A DNA stretch of 64,000 nt from Bugula neritina (GCA_964035545.1 OZ037772.1:8673150-8737149); one strand, 5' to 3'. Positions 18,274 through 35,405 are shown, numbered from the stretch's first letter. Notes: generated by a model not told the origin, from the sequence alone. Program-made: numbers and translations.

Positions 18274-21200
18274 TTAGCTACAAGAAGGTAAAACATCAAT
18301 AAACACCTGTTTACTGTCTCTATTCACAGAGTAACACAAGTTAAAGTATTGTTTCGATTGAAACTTCTCTCTCATTACTCCAGCTACATCTGTTAGCAGA
18401 TCAACTAGTTCTACTCTCTGTACAGATGGAGAAGCACCTTCTAGTAGCAGCAATCTATGAAGATACTCGCTACACACCCATACGGGTGGCTCAGCGTCAT
18501 TTAGTATGTTGTCTATAGACACAGTAGGTTGATAGGGCCCACTGTTAGTAAGTTGAGAGAGGTAGTCGGAGAAATATTTAAAAAACTTTCCAGCTTTTGA
18601 TCTAAAAACATAAAAATAGTTACTTTAAAAAACTGCAGTTACAAAATAAATTTCCATTCAAGTTTAGAAAACTAACAAAGGATGCATGCTTGCAAAATCT
18701 ATAGGAGTGAGGTGTGGCATTCTAAATGCCCACCTGCTGACATGTGGCATAACCTCCTGCTGATTCATGTCATACTCACCTGCTGACATGTGGCAAACAT
18801 ACCGTGGTATACTCACCTGCTATCATGTACTACACCCACCTGCTGACATGTGCCACACCCACCTGCTATCAGGCAAAGTTGTGAAACAGACATAGCAGTC
18901 TGCTGGGAGGTCCAAAGGTTTGAATGTTGACCTTTTCCACTCTTCTTCTCTCTCTGTGTCAGGTAATACTTGCTCTGTTGGCTTGTAAAGAAGTTCTATC
19001 TCATTCTCTGGCCAAGGAAACTCATTGCTAGATTCAAAACTATGAGGAGCTCTGTTGTATATGGCTGAAATATCTCCTCTGCAGCAGGACAGGAATAGTA
19101 GCTGAAATGACCAACATGTGAGTGAAAGACGGAAGCACCAACTGAAAGGTACACAGTTTAACTCACGCAAATAGCTGTCATCCCTGCGAGAGACCGCTGA
19201 TAAAAAGGGGTTCTTTGTTAAATCAGGCTAATGTCTTATTCAGATGGGGCACAGGAGCAAGTATGACTATAGATGCTCTTCCTATAAACATCACCAATGA
19301 CCTTCAGTGGGGTTCGAACCCATGACTTTGTGCTCTAACCCCTATACCACAGTTGACTAGTATTTAAAAAATGCAATACAAAAACAGTACCTATACTTAA
19401 AGTCTTTATCCTCAAATTCGTTATAAAGCACAATCCAATTATTTGCACGAGCTGTATTAATTTTTAGTGTTTTATAATTATCTAAACGAAATATTGGTTC
19501 AATGATAAATTTGAGTAATTGACGATTACCTTTGGAATGGCTGTGACTTGACCTGAATTAAAGGTGTTGACCACTTCCTGTGTGGAGCATTTAGAAACTC
19601 CATCGTGTCCATAAATCATACCATCCTTGCCATGGGAAAAGACAACCAAGGCAGCTAGTGACTCATGCCCTTCTGATTTGGAGTACTGATATATAGAACT
19701 CAGCATTTCTTCTGCTGACAAATCTTGTTTCACTTCAACCTAGATTAATATTCAGAGATATGAGAAAAATGTAATATGCGCTTCTTGGAATGTCTTTTTA
19801 AACTTTGTTTTGTGATTATTATGTGTATACAAACTTTTATTAACCTATTTATAAGTTTTTATATCTCAAAATTCAAAAGTACAGAATATCTTAGCACATA
19901 TATAAAGGTAATACTCACAGAAAATCTCAAATGGTTAGTAAAAATCTTTTGAGCATGTGCAAGGGCTTCTTTTCGAAGCTGAGAGATCAGTTTCTCACCA
20001 TCAGTTGGATTATCAGACAGCCCTAAGTTGTTGCAGATGATTAAAGCTTTTCCTCTCTTTTCTTTGCTGGTATAAGAAGTTGCTACATCCTGTTCAATTG
20101 TTCCAGTTAGTTCTTTTTCAGCATCTCTATTAGCTTCATCATAAGCTGGATTCTGAACTACTCGACTGGATGGTTCAATTGCTACTAATCTATGAGTGTC
20201 TGTCAAGAACTTGGTGTCATCTGCTAAGAAATCATTTTCATCTCGGACAAATCTCTTGTTTAGAGTTGAGTTGACATCTATCTGTTGCACGTTGGGGTTA
20301 CAACTAAGTGCGACAATCAAATCGTGTATAGATTTGTAGCTCTTCATATCCGGCATTTGTCTTCTGAAATGTAGATTGACACAGATTTGTAATGTATATA
20401 TTTATATTCAACTGCATACTTAAGAGTAAAATGACCTAAATATTGCAGCAAAGCATTGCTATGTTATTTTTATATGTAAAGCTTTTTATGTAAAGCCTTA
20501 AGTTTCATTATTTCTATACTAATACGTACTACTATACGTTTCTCACCTATTCTCACCTACCCTGCTTTGTACTGTCCATGGGTAGCGGCAATCCTATACT
20601 ATTTTTATGTTGACATACTGTTGTAACATGTATTGCTACACCCTTTCTATTCTAAAATATTGCTGCTAAACATTGCTATGCTAAATTTTCTATGATAACA
20701 ACATTGCTATAACACATTGCTATATACTGTTTCTATATATATAATAACTAACACATTGCTATGCTATTTCTATGCCAAAACATTGCGGTAACACATGCTA
20801 TAATACCTTGTATAATCTCTGCTGTATTTTACAGAAAGTATCAAATAGTCAGGACCAGGGGGCATAAGGTCAAGTTCTTCATCAACAGCTGACATTTGTA
20901 TTACTGCTATCTAAAATACGACCAAACATTTTCTTTATATTGAAATTGAAGAATTAAGCTTTATTGTATCTGATCAGCAGTATAGTTACTAAATAAAACC
21001 AGCTTGTAGGTCTTACAATTATTAGATGTGACATGCATGCTATATGGACAACAAAATGCTTTATGAAAAGTTTCAGTGTATCAGATGCACTAATATTTCT
21101 CTTTGTGTAGGTTCCACTAAGTATAAATTCAAAATGCTTGTAAAATAGTAAAACATGCACAAATTATAGGAATTCTATTAAAAAATACAGTTCAAAAGCT

Positions 21201-32600: not shown

Positions 32601-35405
32601 GTAGGTCTTACAATTATTAGACGTGCCATCACAGAGAGAAATATTAATGTTAGAGTGAACATTAGCTGACAACTGATCATGCATGCTACATGGACAATAA
32701 AATGCTTTATGGACAACTTTATTGTATCAGATGCACTAATATTTCTCTTTGTGTAGGTTTTATACTAAGTAAATATTCAAAATGCTTGTCAAATAGTAAA
32801 ACAATAGTAAAACATGCACAAATTATAGGAATCCTATATAAAACCAAAAGAAAAACACAATTTAAAACCTTTTTTTATACAAGTGTGAAAGATTTTAATT
32901 GCACATGTCAGCATTTAAAATGCTTTTTGACACTTAAATTCCCTACCTTAGGCTTGCCACTGTATCCAGGTACATCCATTTCATTAAGGACAGTTTGTAT
33001 GTTTGGCTGTTTGGGCTCATCAACCTTGTCAGTGTCTACGGCAACGAACATGCAATCATCTTCAACTGGTGATGTCTAGCATGCAGAAAGATATTATTAA
33101 AGCTGAGTAAACCAATTTGATAGTACCTGCATGTATGTTAAATATAAAAACCATAAGAGAACATAAAAAGAATATGACAACATTTTGCATTTCTACAACG
33201 AGATCTCGTATGTTTTTACCCAAATTGCAAATCTGAAGTGCAAGAACAATCTTTAAATTCAAACTCCTGTTTGGAAATTTAAATTTATAGTTGTATTGTG
33301 CTAAAGTATTGCAGATGTAGTATATTAAAATGTCAAAATAAAATAAATTTCAAGGTTTCACATTCAAGTTTGAGAGCAAAGTCTTGAACTAAATTATAGT
33401 GATGCTGACAATAAAATGCTGAGAATAAAAAGATCTAGTGAATTTATTTTAAAGTTTGTGCAAAAAGGCGAAATATGGAATTTATATCTACCAAAGCTTT
33501 TGACACTTCAGTTTCGTTCACAGAAGAGATGACAGTCTGTTGAATAGCAACAGCTGAAGAGAATAAGGTGTGTGAAGTTGTGTAGGCGAAGTCCAAAAGT
33601 GAGTATTCATTCAACGAGTACTTAAGCACTTTCAGAATAGTTTCATCGTATCTATATAGAGTTTCAGGGTGCTTCAATTGATTCTGAAACTCTTTTGAAT
33701 AAAAGAGTGTAATATGGCTAAATGCCGAGAGTAGAGTCTCGTTTGCATTGTTGCAGAGAATCTTTCTCATATAGAACTGTTCATGGAAACCTTTTTTCTT
33801 AATAATTTTTCTACAATCAACTAATTGTAAATTTTGTGAGTTTGCTATACTCTTCCTCCCTGATAAAGGAAGCTGCAATATAAAGTCAGCAAAAACTTTA
33901 GTGTCATACTTGGCAGCAACATAGTGAATTGGCGTGTTACCGTTTACATCAGGGTATATCAGATTCTTAACGTCGGCGTAATATAAATACTCTTGTAGTT
34001 CTGTATAGAGCTCTTTGAGAGATGATGAAAGAGCTGCCAGATGTAAAATGTTTTGGCGATGCTTGTTATGCTTTTGCATAAAGCTTCTGATTTTTTTAGC
34101 ATCGTAATTATCCTCCATGTATAGTAGAACTTCTCTTAAAGCGCTTGATCTTCCAAATTTGGTCAACATCAGAATTGGTGTGTTTCCATCAATCTCTTCA
34201 AGCAAAAATATTTTTTCCAGCAGTTCCGAGTTTCCCGCACCAAGAAGAATTTTAACAATGGTGGCATTATTTGCATAATGCAAAACTGTAGATCCATCAG
34301 CTGTTTGAGCAAACAGCAACTCTGCATCAATCTGAGATAAGTTACAGAAATACTCTACTACATCACTTCTACCTAGAAGTGATGCCATTTGCAATGCTGT
34401 TGTCTGAGACTTGTTAACAGAGAGCATAAAATCCATTTGTCTTTCTTTTCTGACAGAATTCACAAGTAACTTGGCTATTTCCCCATTAGCAACAAGATGT
34501 AGAGCTGTTTCACCAGACAAACTTTCCTTTAGAATCAGTTCATCGTCTGAATATAAACTACAGAGATACTGTACAACATCAGTTCTGCCAGAATAAGAAG
34601 CTGTATGTAGAGCTGTCAGTTGAGTTGTATCTGCTGAGTGTACGTAGTCTCTCTGTCTTTCTGGTGAAACTGTATCTACAAGTAACATGGCAACCTCTCT
34701 AGTTTTAGCAAAGAACAGAGCTGTGTCATTATGGCTGTTCTTCTTTAGTACCAGTTGCTCGCTCATTGGATGTAGACTACACAGATACTCAACTACGTCA
34801 GCTCTACCATCCTTGGCAGCTGTATGCAAAGCTGTGTACTGCTTCACATCTTCAGATAATACAAACTCTTCCTGCTTTTCAAACACCACTGAATCTACTA
34901 GCAGTTTAGCTATCCTTCTATTCTTGGCATAATGTAAAGCTTTCCACCCATTGATATCTTCTTTTGTCATGAGCACATCATGGTATGGACATAAACTACA
35001 AAGATATTTTACCACTTGATCTTTACCATCTTCAGCAGCTACGTGTAATGCTGTTCTCTGTTTAACATCAACTGCTAAGATGAAGTCTTCTTGTCTTGAT
35101 GGTTGAACTGATTGGACAAGAACTTCCGCTATTTCTCGGTTTTCAGCGTAGTGTAAAGTTGTCATGCCTGATTTGTCTCTTTTGAGTATCAGTTCATCAT
35201 CATTAGAATATAAACCACACAAGTACTCAACCACGTCAGTTGTACCAAAGACAGAGGCAGCGTGCAGAGCTGTACACTGATCAGCGTCAACAGAAAATAC
35301 AAAATCTCTTTGTTTCTCCTGTGGAACAGAGTTGACCAATGATTCCGCCATTGCTCGGTCTTCAGCATAATGTAAATCTGACCCAATGCGGGAAACACTA
35401 TCCAT
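29661..35405 (-). CDS. Ankyrin-repeat / pseudo-caspase / caspase fusion protein, copy B (~1122 aa)
   Basis: Exons (minus): 35405(ATG)-33492, 33075-32947, 32507-32404, 31875-31431, 31251-31042, 30601-30363, 29988-29661. Same exon sizes as copy A (129, 104, 445, 210, 239, 328) except the ankyrin exon (1914 vs 1896 nt). FSHG and SCCRG are intact. Confidence 0.88.
30678..30855 (-). mobile_element. tRNA-derived SINE (family 1)
   Basis: ggatgcttttcctaacatcaccaatggccttt..gggtttgaacccatgac. Confidence 0.7.
32247..32330. repeat. (TA)n microsatellite
   Basis: Expanded relative to the short TA run near 20735 in unit 1. Confidence 0.95.

Follow-up and report, generated by a model that had tools for sequence, protein, structure and literature searches.

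Known ankyrin caspases and the Bugula locus

In the textbook account, caspases depend on death-fold adaptors and induced dimerisation for their activation. Here we describe two genes of the bryozoan Bugula neritina in which an ankyrin array and a caspase are joined in one chain. Both lie on the minus strand of a 64,000 nt stretch of DNA (GCA_964035545.1 OZ037772.1:8673150-8737149), called the window below, whose base composition is that of AT-rich animal DNA. The closest described proteins, the ANK-Caspases, were named in parasitic flatworms and one annelid in a preprint on lophotrochozoan apoptosis (bioRxiv 10.1101/2023.12.11.571055). The same preprint credits Lee et al. 2014 for Schistosoma, sampled no bryozoans and describes an ANK-Caspase clade that is confined to parasitic flatworms and forms the sister group of DED-caspases; an initiator role with recruitment to a platform was proposed for these proteins. 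For the DSRM-caspases of oysters, direct pathogen detection, or a function as viral sensors, was suggested by the authors (PMC7836458).

Several other caspase fusions were found in databases. Tick ANK-RING-caspases (Haemaphysalis longicornis LOC144147085 and paralogues) are present as uncharacterised RefSeq entries, and there are a hemichordate leucine-rich-repeat (LRR) caspase and a sponge ApoL-caspase. An earlier reading of the window made from its sequence alone (the sequence-only reading) had described the two genes as candidate single-chain sensor/proteases. ANK-Caspases and ANK-RING-caspases had already been named or deposited, although they are not functionally characterised. The layout itself is thus known from elsewhere, and what is new here is a putative pseudo-caspase in cis together with very variable arrays.

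Gene structure and transcript evidence

The analysis confirmed the joining of array and caspase in one chain and its conservation. Copy 1 (18274-23718) and copy 2 (29661-35405) are each a single minus-strand gene with seven exons. With the seven exons joined in silico, as was done for all codon, stop and substitution counts, copy 1 gives 1116 codons in frame and copy 2 gives 1122, both with 0 internal stops; an 18-nt insertion in exon 1 distinguishes copy 2, the rest of its codon chain being as in copy 1. Exon borders were drawn from the sequence and from paralogue proteins and then checked against reads for copy 1, while the exon coordinates of copy 2 were mapped by alignment to copy 1. Domain searches were carried out exon by exon, and the paralogue gene models P0005, P0016 and P0017 stood for the whole protein. 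The exons are as follows.

Copy 1, 21823..23718, minus strand: exon 1, 13 ankyrin repeats (approximately residues 1-440) and a helical degenerate-ankyrin tail (Pfam, joint)
Copy 1, 23718-23716, minus strand: start codon
Copy 1, after 21823, minus strand: donor of exon 1; the unspliced frame would stop at 21775-21777
Copy 1, 21282..21410, minus strand: exon 2, the putative caspase-like module's first strand and helix; ends GKPK, phase 0 (joints at both ends)
Copy 1, 20807..20910, minus strand: exon 3, two strands of the putative module; ends in phase 2 (joints at both ends)
Copy 1, 19919..20363, minus strand: exon 4, end of the putative module (VNSTLNKR), variable acidic linker and start of the active p20 (KALIICNN) (joints, paralogue alignments, AlphaFold2 (AF2), ESM Atlas)
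Copy 1, 19530..19739, minus strand: exon 5, p20 with the catalytic His (VVFSHG) (Peptidase_C14, 24.8 bits)
Copy 1, 18863..19101, minus strand: exon 6, which carries the catalytic Cys (LFLSCCRG), the linker between the subunits, the first strand of p10 and TLPDS(R) (joint 18863>18601)
Copy 1, 18274..18601, minus strand: exon 7, remaining p10 and stop codon at 18274-18276 (joint, caspase fold of the paralogue domain)
Copy 2, 33492..35405, minus strand: exon 1, ankyrin array and tail (Pfam Ank_2, E=5.7e-53)
Copy 2, 32947..33075, minus strand: exon 2 (alignment to copy 1)
Copy 2, 32404..32507, minus strand: exon 3 (alignment to copy 1)
Copy 2, 31431..31875, minus strand: exon 4 (alignment to copy 1)
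Copy 2, 31042..31251, minus strand: exon 5 with the His, identical to copy 1 across 210 nt (Peptidase_C14)
Copy 2, 30363..30601, minus strand: exon 6 with the Cys (alignment to copy 1, genomic match of the Cys exon)
Copy 2, 29661..29988, minus strand: exon 7 and stop codon, coding to 29664 (alignment to copy 1)

Splicing was examined over the region 18200-23800 in contigs of three public runs. Runs X1 and X2 are labelled metagenomic RNA-Seq, their RNA status being the guess of the tool used, and run X3 is DNA-like. The stretches skipped at the joints of the X1 and X2 contigs have CT..AC ends on the plus strand and hence GT..AG ends on the minus strand. The joint 21823>21410, which connects the ankyrin exon with exon 2, was found in one X1 contig with 41 letters on the shorter side. 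Further joints in these runs are 21282>20910, 20807>20363, ~19921>19740 and 18863>18601, so that GT..AG joints are present for five of the six introns and the exon links 1>2>3>4>5 and 6>7 are carried by RNA-like runs; a single X2 contig (664 nt) spans exons 5, 4 and 3. The depth of X1 and X2 was zero in the bins located wholly inside introns 1, 2 and 3 (21566-21752, 21005-21191 and 20444-20630). The same bins were covered in X3, where none of the X1 and X2 joints were present. The remaining junction, between exons 5 and 6, is based on paralogue conservation and NCBI models.

According to the sequence-only reading, the ankyrin exon was spliced in frame directly to the caspase exons. The common frame was borne out by the joint 21823>21410, but two small exons intervene and the connection is not direct. 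That array and caspase belong to one transcript and one reading frame is supported by the RNA-like joints and the open codon chain.

A contrary explanation is that the ankyrin and caspase parts are separate neighbouring genes and that wrong gene models or chimeric contigs only make them look fused. The unspliced ankyrin frame does stop 45 nt past the donor, and the NCBI Bugula models (P0005, P0011, P0016 and P0017) are fragmentary, none of them holding the array together with a complete caspase. However, an ankyrin gene ending at 21775 is countered by the GT..AG joint 21823>21410 in an RNA-like run and by the zero depth in intron 1. In addition, searches of the 216-Mb Bugula neritina assembly revealed the same one-strand order, tail and then exons 2 to 7, at the 18 paralogue loci and in both window copies (20/20), and in three of the NCBI models (P0005, P0016 and P0017) the tail is connected with the caspase. 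The same order was found in Watersipora subatra (L027, OY755159.1:39833047-39856008), where array, tail and exon 2 lie in one 731-codon open frame that is followed by exons 3-7 with SHG and CRG; this shared frame independently makes the array and the downstream exons one coding unit. Two separate genes are therefore very improbable, and this explanation was rejected on the RNA joints, the colinearity of the 20 loci and the Watersipora open frame. The RefSeq protein of Watersipora contains exons 5-7 only, and such truncated public models are probably the reason why the architecture is absent from domain surveys. Downstream of the Watersipora gene (L027 17345-22960), very long open frames were observed on both strands (1872 codons on plus); this is probably a tandem repeat, and the Pfam matches there look spurious.

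With regard to the N-terminus, the start codon of copy 1 is preceded by a pyrimidine tract and a cag acceptor. The ORF-derived (open reading frame) paralogue proteins begin a few residues ahead of the first ankyrin repeat, and for this reason the protein of copy 1 most likely starts at the array.

Active caspase domain

Pfam searches recovered, in both copies, the two families for which the sequence-only reading had proposed a search, Ank and Peptidase_C14. The His exon matched Peptidase_C14 with 24.8 and 25.0 bits in copies 1 and 2 (cut-off 21.4), and the paralogue models P0017 and P0016 matched it with 47.3 and 45.5 bits. The His/Cys dyad is retained, as had been claimed, with VVFSHG and LFLSCCRG in both copies. 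Among the paralogue and window loci, SHG is kept in 20/20 and CRG in all 19/20 where the motif aligned; TLPDS is invariant except at one locus with TMPDS. His, Cys, the Gly after His and the p10 motif TLPDSR are kept across paralogues that are 30-40% identical, as well as in Watersipora.

The fold was modelled on the paralogue P0017, which stood for the protein of the window. The AF2 model of P0017:190-498 (predicted local distance difference test, pLDDT, 77.9) showed a caspase fold with p20 and p10, and Foldseek matched it to caspase-11, -8, -9, -3, -7 and CED-3 (E 1e-12 to 1e-9; template modelling (TM) score by target 0.6-0.75); for caspase-11, -8, -9, -3 and CED-3, TM by target was 0.65-0.75 with E ~1e-11. 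The closest PDB sequence is caspase-2 p18 (E=2.6e-11), and the closest named proteins are caspase-2 and CED-3. Of the three Asp-binding P1-pocket positions (Arg179, Gln283 and Arg341, caspase-1 numbering), Arg341 has a retained equivalent (TLPDSR), Gln283 is mostly Ser and the Arg179 column varies. We take the caspase to be complete and probably active.

Probable middle caspase-like module

The array exon and the active caspase are separated by exons 21282-21410 and 20807-20910 together with the opening third of the exon that follows. This region lacks the catalytic His position in exon 2 and lacks the Cys: exon 3 has IAVIQ at the place of the Cys motif of the active domain, with a conserved PPGPDYLIL. 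Exon 2 is conserved in 14 paralogues and exon 3 in 19 loci. The AF2 model of the paralogue region P0005:60-400 showed the topology strand-helix-strand-strand-helix-strand for the module, for which the best Foldseek matches were procaspase-8, caspase-6 and the protease-like domain of c-FLIP-L (3h13), with E 0.03-0.05 and, for procaspase-8 and c-FLIP-L, probability 0.87-0.93. In the ESM Atlas, residues 240-375 gave Peptidase_C14 in 29/30 feature matches and a structural TM of 0.67 to a caspase-7-like model. The two introns of the module match those of the active domain in position and phase (after ..PK, phase 0; after the next strand, phase 2). When the exons were compared pairwise by profile, exon 2 with exon 5 scored best among 28 pairs (E 0.0013); the hhalign probabilities were 10-18%. 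At its end, the module carries a ..Q....NSTLNKR.. motif which, in our reading of the paralogue alignment, resembles the canonical caspase C-terminus.

Other searches were less informative. Pfam gave no match of Peptidase_C14 to the module at E up to 10, and hhalign of the module profile against the caspase profile produced only a 29-column match with a probability of 9.9%. Only four strands are retained in the AF2 model of the module. Fold searches by VIA-align with the model of tail plus module were filled by ankyrin structures and were uninformative on the alpha/beta module. Overall, we consider it fairly probable that the region is a degenerate caspase-like module without His and Cys.

The module bears on whether the proteins are catalytic at all. 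They could be non-catalytic regulators of other caspases, that is, cFLIP-like decoys, and the presence of a caspase-like module without the dyad and the high divergence of the catalytic domain (stem branch 1.95) are in line with this. Yet His, Cys, the Gly after His and TLPDSR persist in 30-40% identical paralogues and in Watersipora, and the ratio of nonsynonymous to synonymous substitution (dN/dS) of the caspase part is 0.19, which makes decoys a very improbable explanation.

Two complete tandem caspase domains were observed in P0091 (Oppiella nova, a mite), P0069 (Notodromas monacha, an ostracod) and P0134; within each of these proteins, both caspase domains are mutual closest relatives.

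Ankyrin array and absence of death-fold domains

Large minus-strand ORFs of both copies matched Ank_2 in Pfam (E=1e-42 for copy 1 and 5.7e-53 for copy 2), and each copy contains 13-14 ankyrin repeats followed by a helical tail. The tail is kept at 19-20 loci of the genome; the paralogue model P0005:60-400 begins with more ankyrin-like helices, and ankyrin structures were matched at Z 8-10. Across the loci, single-exon ORFs of 491-3025 residues precede the tail, and the array size varies from 13 to ~85 repeats among the paralogues. ORFs of 1015, 1601, 2452 and 3016 residues showed strong or convincing matches to ankyrin families only; none of the few non-ankyrin matches had its own qualifying stretch, and they seem to be repeat artefacts.

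No CARD, DED or DD was found by Pfam in the exons or in the scanned upstream and inter-copy minus-strand ORFs, in agreement with the sequence-only reading, and those ORFs had no other Pfam domain. In the window exons and the paralogue models, Pfam gave only ankyrin and Peptidase_C14; neither a NACHT/NB-ARC NTPase nor a RING finger was matched. Since there is no NACHT/NB-ARC oligomerisation module, the comparison with nucleotide-binding leucine-rich-repeat receptors that had been drawn earlier proves to be a loose one.

The array might act as a prodomain that recruits the protease to an activator or platform, in which case an adaptor and induced proximity would still be needed. The same was proposed for flatworm ANK-Caspases (bioRxiv 10.1101/2023.12.11.571055), and the closest catalytic relatives, caspase-2 and CED-3, are of the initiator type. 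However, one common adaptor is difficult to reconcile with arrays of 13 to ~85 repeats across 20 paralogues, and a caspase-like module in cis would make induced dimerisation unnecessary. Recruitment of this kind seems rather unlikely to us.

Bryozoan family and genome context

The Cys exon had 20 genomic matches, all within open frames, and the tail had 19. A search of 1.84 billion representative proteins yielded only 107 matches, among which the strong ones were exon-sized bryozoan-like fragments and the rest were ordinary or caspase-2-like caspases with E ~1e-7 or weaker. On these searches, the family of ~20 genes is to be regarded as bryozoan-specific. In the genome, at least 177 exon matches to Peptidase_C14 were found next to only 3 DED and 4 CARD matches, none of the latter two at the window genes. 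The caspase expansion is clustered, for example at C1:33-35 Mb, C6:3.5-6.3 Mb and C7:7.58-7.71 Mb, and several p20 exons lie within open frames of 400-695 codons, a hint of more unusual fusions.

Duplication, divergence and selection

Self-BLAST of the window showed that the two gene copies are halves of a tandem duplication of 11.4-11.9 kb with 85-95% identity:

13473..24595, strand not applicable: first unit of the tandem duplication
25349..36259, strand not applicable: second unit of the tandem duplication

Between the copies, dN/dS is 0.26 both overall and in the array, and falls to 0.20 in the tail and 0.19 in the caspase; the family is under purifying selection, and positive selection on the array between the copies was not supported. 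The introns differ by 7.5%. The array has a synonymous divergence (dS) of 0.26, three times the 0.085 of the caspase, while exon 5 and intron 4 (19530-19918 vs 31042-31430) show 0/210 and 1/179 differences, respectively. This near-identity beside a high dS in the array points to recent gene conversion in the 3' half of the gene, not to selection on the array.

The approximately 20 paralogues, the range from 13 to ~85 repeats and the purifying selection fit a recognition role for the array. It is also possible, though less likely, that the array is a module for picking substrates or for anchoring and not a sensor, the protease being regulated otherwise, e.g., through cleavage by another caspase; the array of each paralogue would then bring different targets, or a different cell location, to the protease. 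It is established that ankyrin arrays are general protein-binding scaffolds; here they vary greatly among the paralogues while the protease is conserved, their dN/dS is not raised, and with at least 177 Peptidase_C14 exon matches upstream caspases would be plentiful. On the other hand, very long arrays of differing length, spread over a large family confined to one lineage, would rather be expected of recognition receptors. The present data fit anchoring and sensing alike.

Other features of the duplicated region were noted. A fibronectin type III exon (fn3, E=1e-6) is located at 26054-26302 on the plus strand, inside the duplicated unit, and its duplicate lies within 13473-14847; a second gene was therefore copied along with the ankyrin caspase. 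Just upstream of copy 1, adjoining a GC-skew dip, there is a long low-complexity tract (24830-25525) that would translate to poly-Tyr/His, poly-Leu/Pro or poly-Val depending on the frame. A 309-codon ORF (38482-39411, minus), which precedes copy 2 and shares its strand, had no Pfam match. Intron 5 of copy 1 (19214-19335) and its equivalent in copy 2 contain a high-copy interspersed repeat with a tRNA-like stretch, in which ARAGORN called no tRNA; contig depth at 19214-19335 is raised 100- to 400-fold in X1, X2 and X3, and many contigs break there.

Proposed mechanism

As a tentative explanation, which we put a little below an even chance, we propose a protein of ~1,120 residues composed of array, tail, dead caspase-like module, linker and caspase, with recognition by the array and pairing in cis. 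The ankyrin solenoid would be a recognition module standing in for CARD or DED. The dead module would pack in cis against the live domain, as cFLIP-L does in trans with caspase-8, and the protease would no longer depend on an adaptor for dimerisation. Ligand on the array would release or concentrate the protease, and this may lead to cell death or to signalling that serves immunity, the control of symbionts or allorecognition between colonies. The mechanism suggested by the sequence-only reading, a sensor-protease activated by ligand binding without adaptors, is plausible; the middle module had been overlooked there and, if modelled correctly, offers an alternative route to adaptor independence, namely a dimer partner in cis.

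Several observations weigh against this proposal. The scores of the pseudo-caspase are weak (Foldseek E >0.01, hhalign probability 10-18%, no Pfam match). The RNA status of X1 and X2 is a guess of the tool, none of their contigs runs from the array to the caspase or through the whole gene, and an exon 5>6 joint is not among the joints listed. Their contigs are only 90-95% identical to the window and therefore come from a diverged genotype; as the closest other paralogue in the genome has only 76% protein identity over exon 6, they are probably from orthologous genes. There is a small residual probability of a further coding exon upstream of 23718. Between the two copies, amino-acid replacements are not enriched in the array (dN/dS 0.26 vs 0.19 for the caspase). 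In the catalytic domain, the P1-pocket Gln position (Gln283, caspase-1 numbering) is Ser in nearly all paralogues, and the Arg179 column is not conserved, a conserved Arg being found six residues further on.

In a bolder form, to which we give a low probability, all ~20 genes would encode one-chain, adaptor-free receptor-proteases. Their fast-changing solenoids would directly bind non-self, that is, a pathogen, a symbiont or a foreign colony; the dead domain would replace dimerisation, the specificity would be non-canonical, and the family would have arisen independently of the flatworm and tick proteins as an animal counterpart of the repeat-fused, caspase-like proteases in bacterial defence.

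The family is large and selectively maintained, and instead of a death-fold domain it carries a variable solenoid and a probable dimer partner in cis. If active, these proteins would provide a tractable test of caspase switching by direct ligand binding and of the replacement of dimerisation by a pseudo-caspase in cis. In a colonial animal with a very large caspase expansion and few CARD and DED matches, they are further candidates for receptors in immunity, symbiosis or allorecognition.

Comparison with known systems

In flatworm ANK-Caspases, as in the bryozoan genes, ankyrin repeats replace the CARD or DED prodomain before p20 and p10. Compared by description, the bryozoan catalytic domain differs in being closest to caspase-2/CED-3, and the bryozoan proteins add the middle module, ~20 paralogues and arrays of up to ~3000 residues. 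Since the search of 1.84 billion proteins gave strong matches only to bryozoan-like fragments, membership of the flatworm clade is unlikely, and the bryozoan family looks independent of it.

The tick ANK-RING-caspases likewise carry their ankyrin repeats on the N-terminal side of a complete Peptidase_C14 domain and have several paralogues. However, a RING is located between their array and caspase, the caspase-like middle module is absent, and their closest relatives are DED-caspase-8-like. A quick tree placed the ankyrin caspases of bryozoans and ticks in separate clades that were not sisters (Shimodaira-Hasegawa-like approximate likelihood ratio test, SH-aLRT, 99 each), with weak deep nodes and with the bryozoan clade on a very long stem (branch 1.95). 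A shared origin with the tick proteins is unsupported by this tree. Taken with the flatworm and tick cases, the bryozoan genes suggest that the ankyrin-caspase fusion arose repeatedly.

The bryozoan domain shares the fold, the His/Cys dyad and its best sequence matches with the C14A initiators caspase-2 and CED-3, but it has no CARD, is ~30-35% identical over p20 only, has SCCRG for QACRG and contains the family-specific long motifs NRAPHSFESS and TLPDSR. The caspase-8/cFLIP-L heterodimer also places a dead caspase-like domain alongside a live one; in the bryozoan protein both would lie in one chain without DEDs and would pair in cis. Oyster DSRM-caspases similarly carry a recognition-type domain in place of the death-fold prodomain, although this is a dsRNA-binding (double-stranded RNA) motif instead of ankyrin and there are two genes rather than a large family (PMC7836458).

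Beyond the caspases, a repeat solenoid and a clan CD protease are combined in one chain in bacterial CHAT-TPR and gasdermin-activating proteases and in separase, the last of which has a pseudo-protease domain directly ahead of the active one. These proteases belong to other clan CD families than caspases, and their likeness to the bryozoan proteins is an analogy in how such proteins may work.

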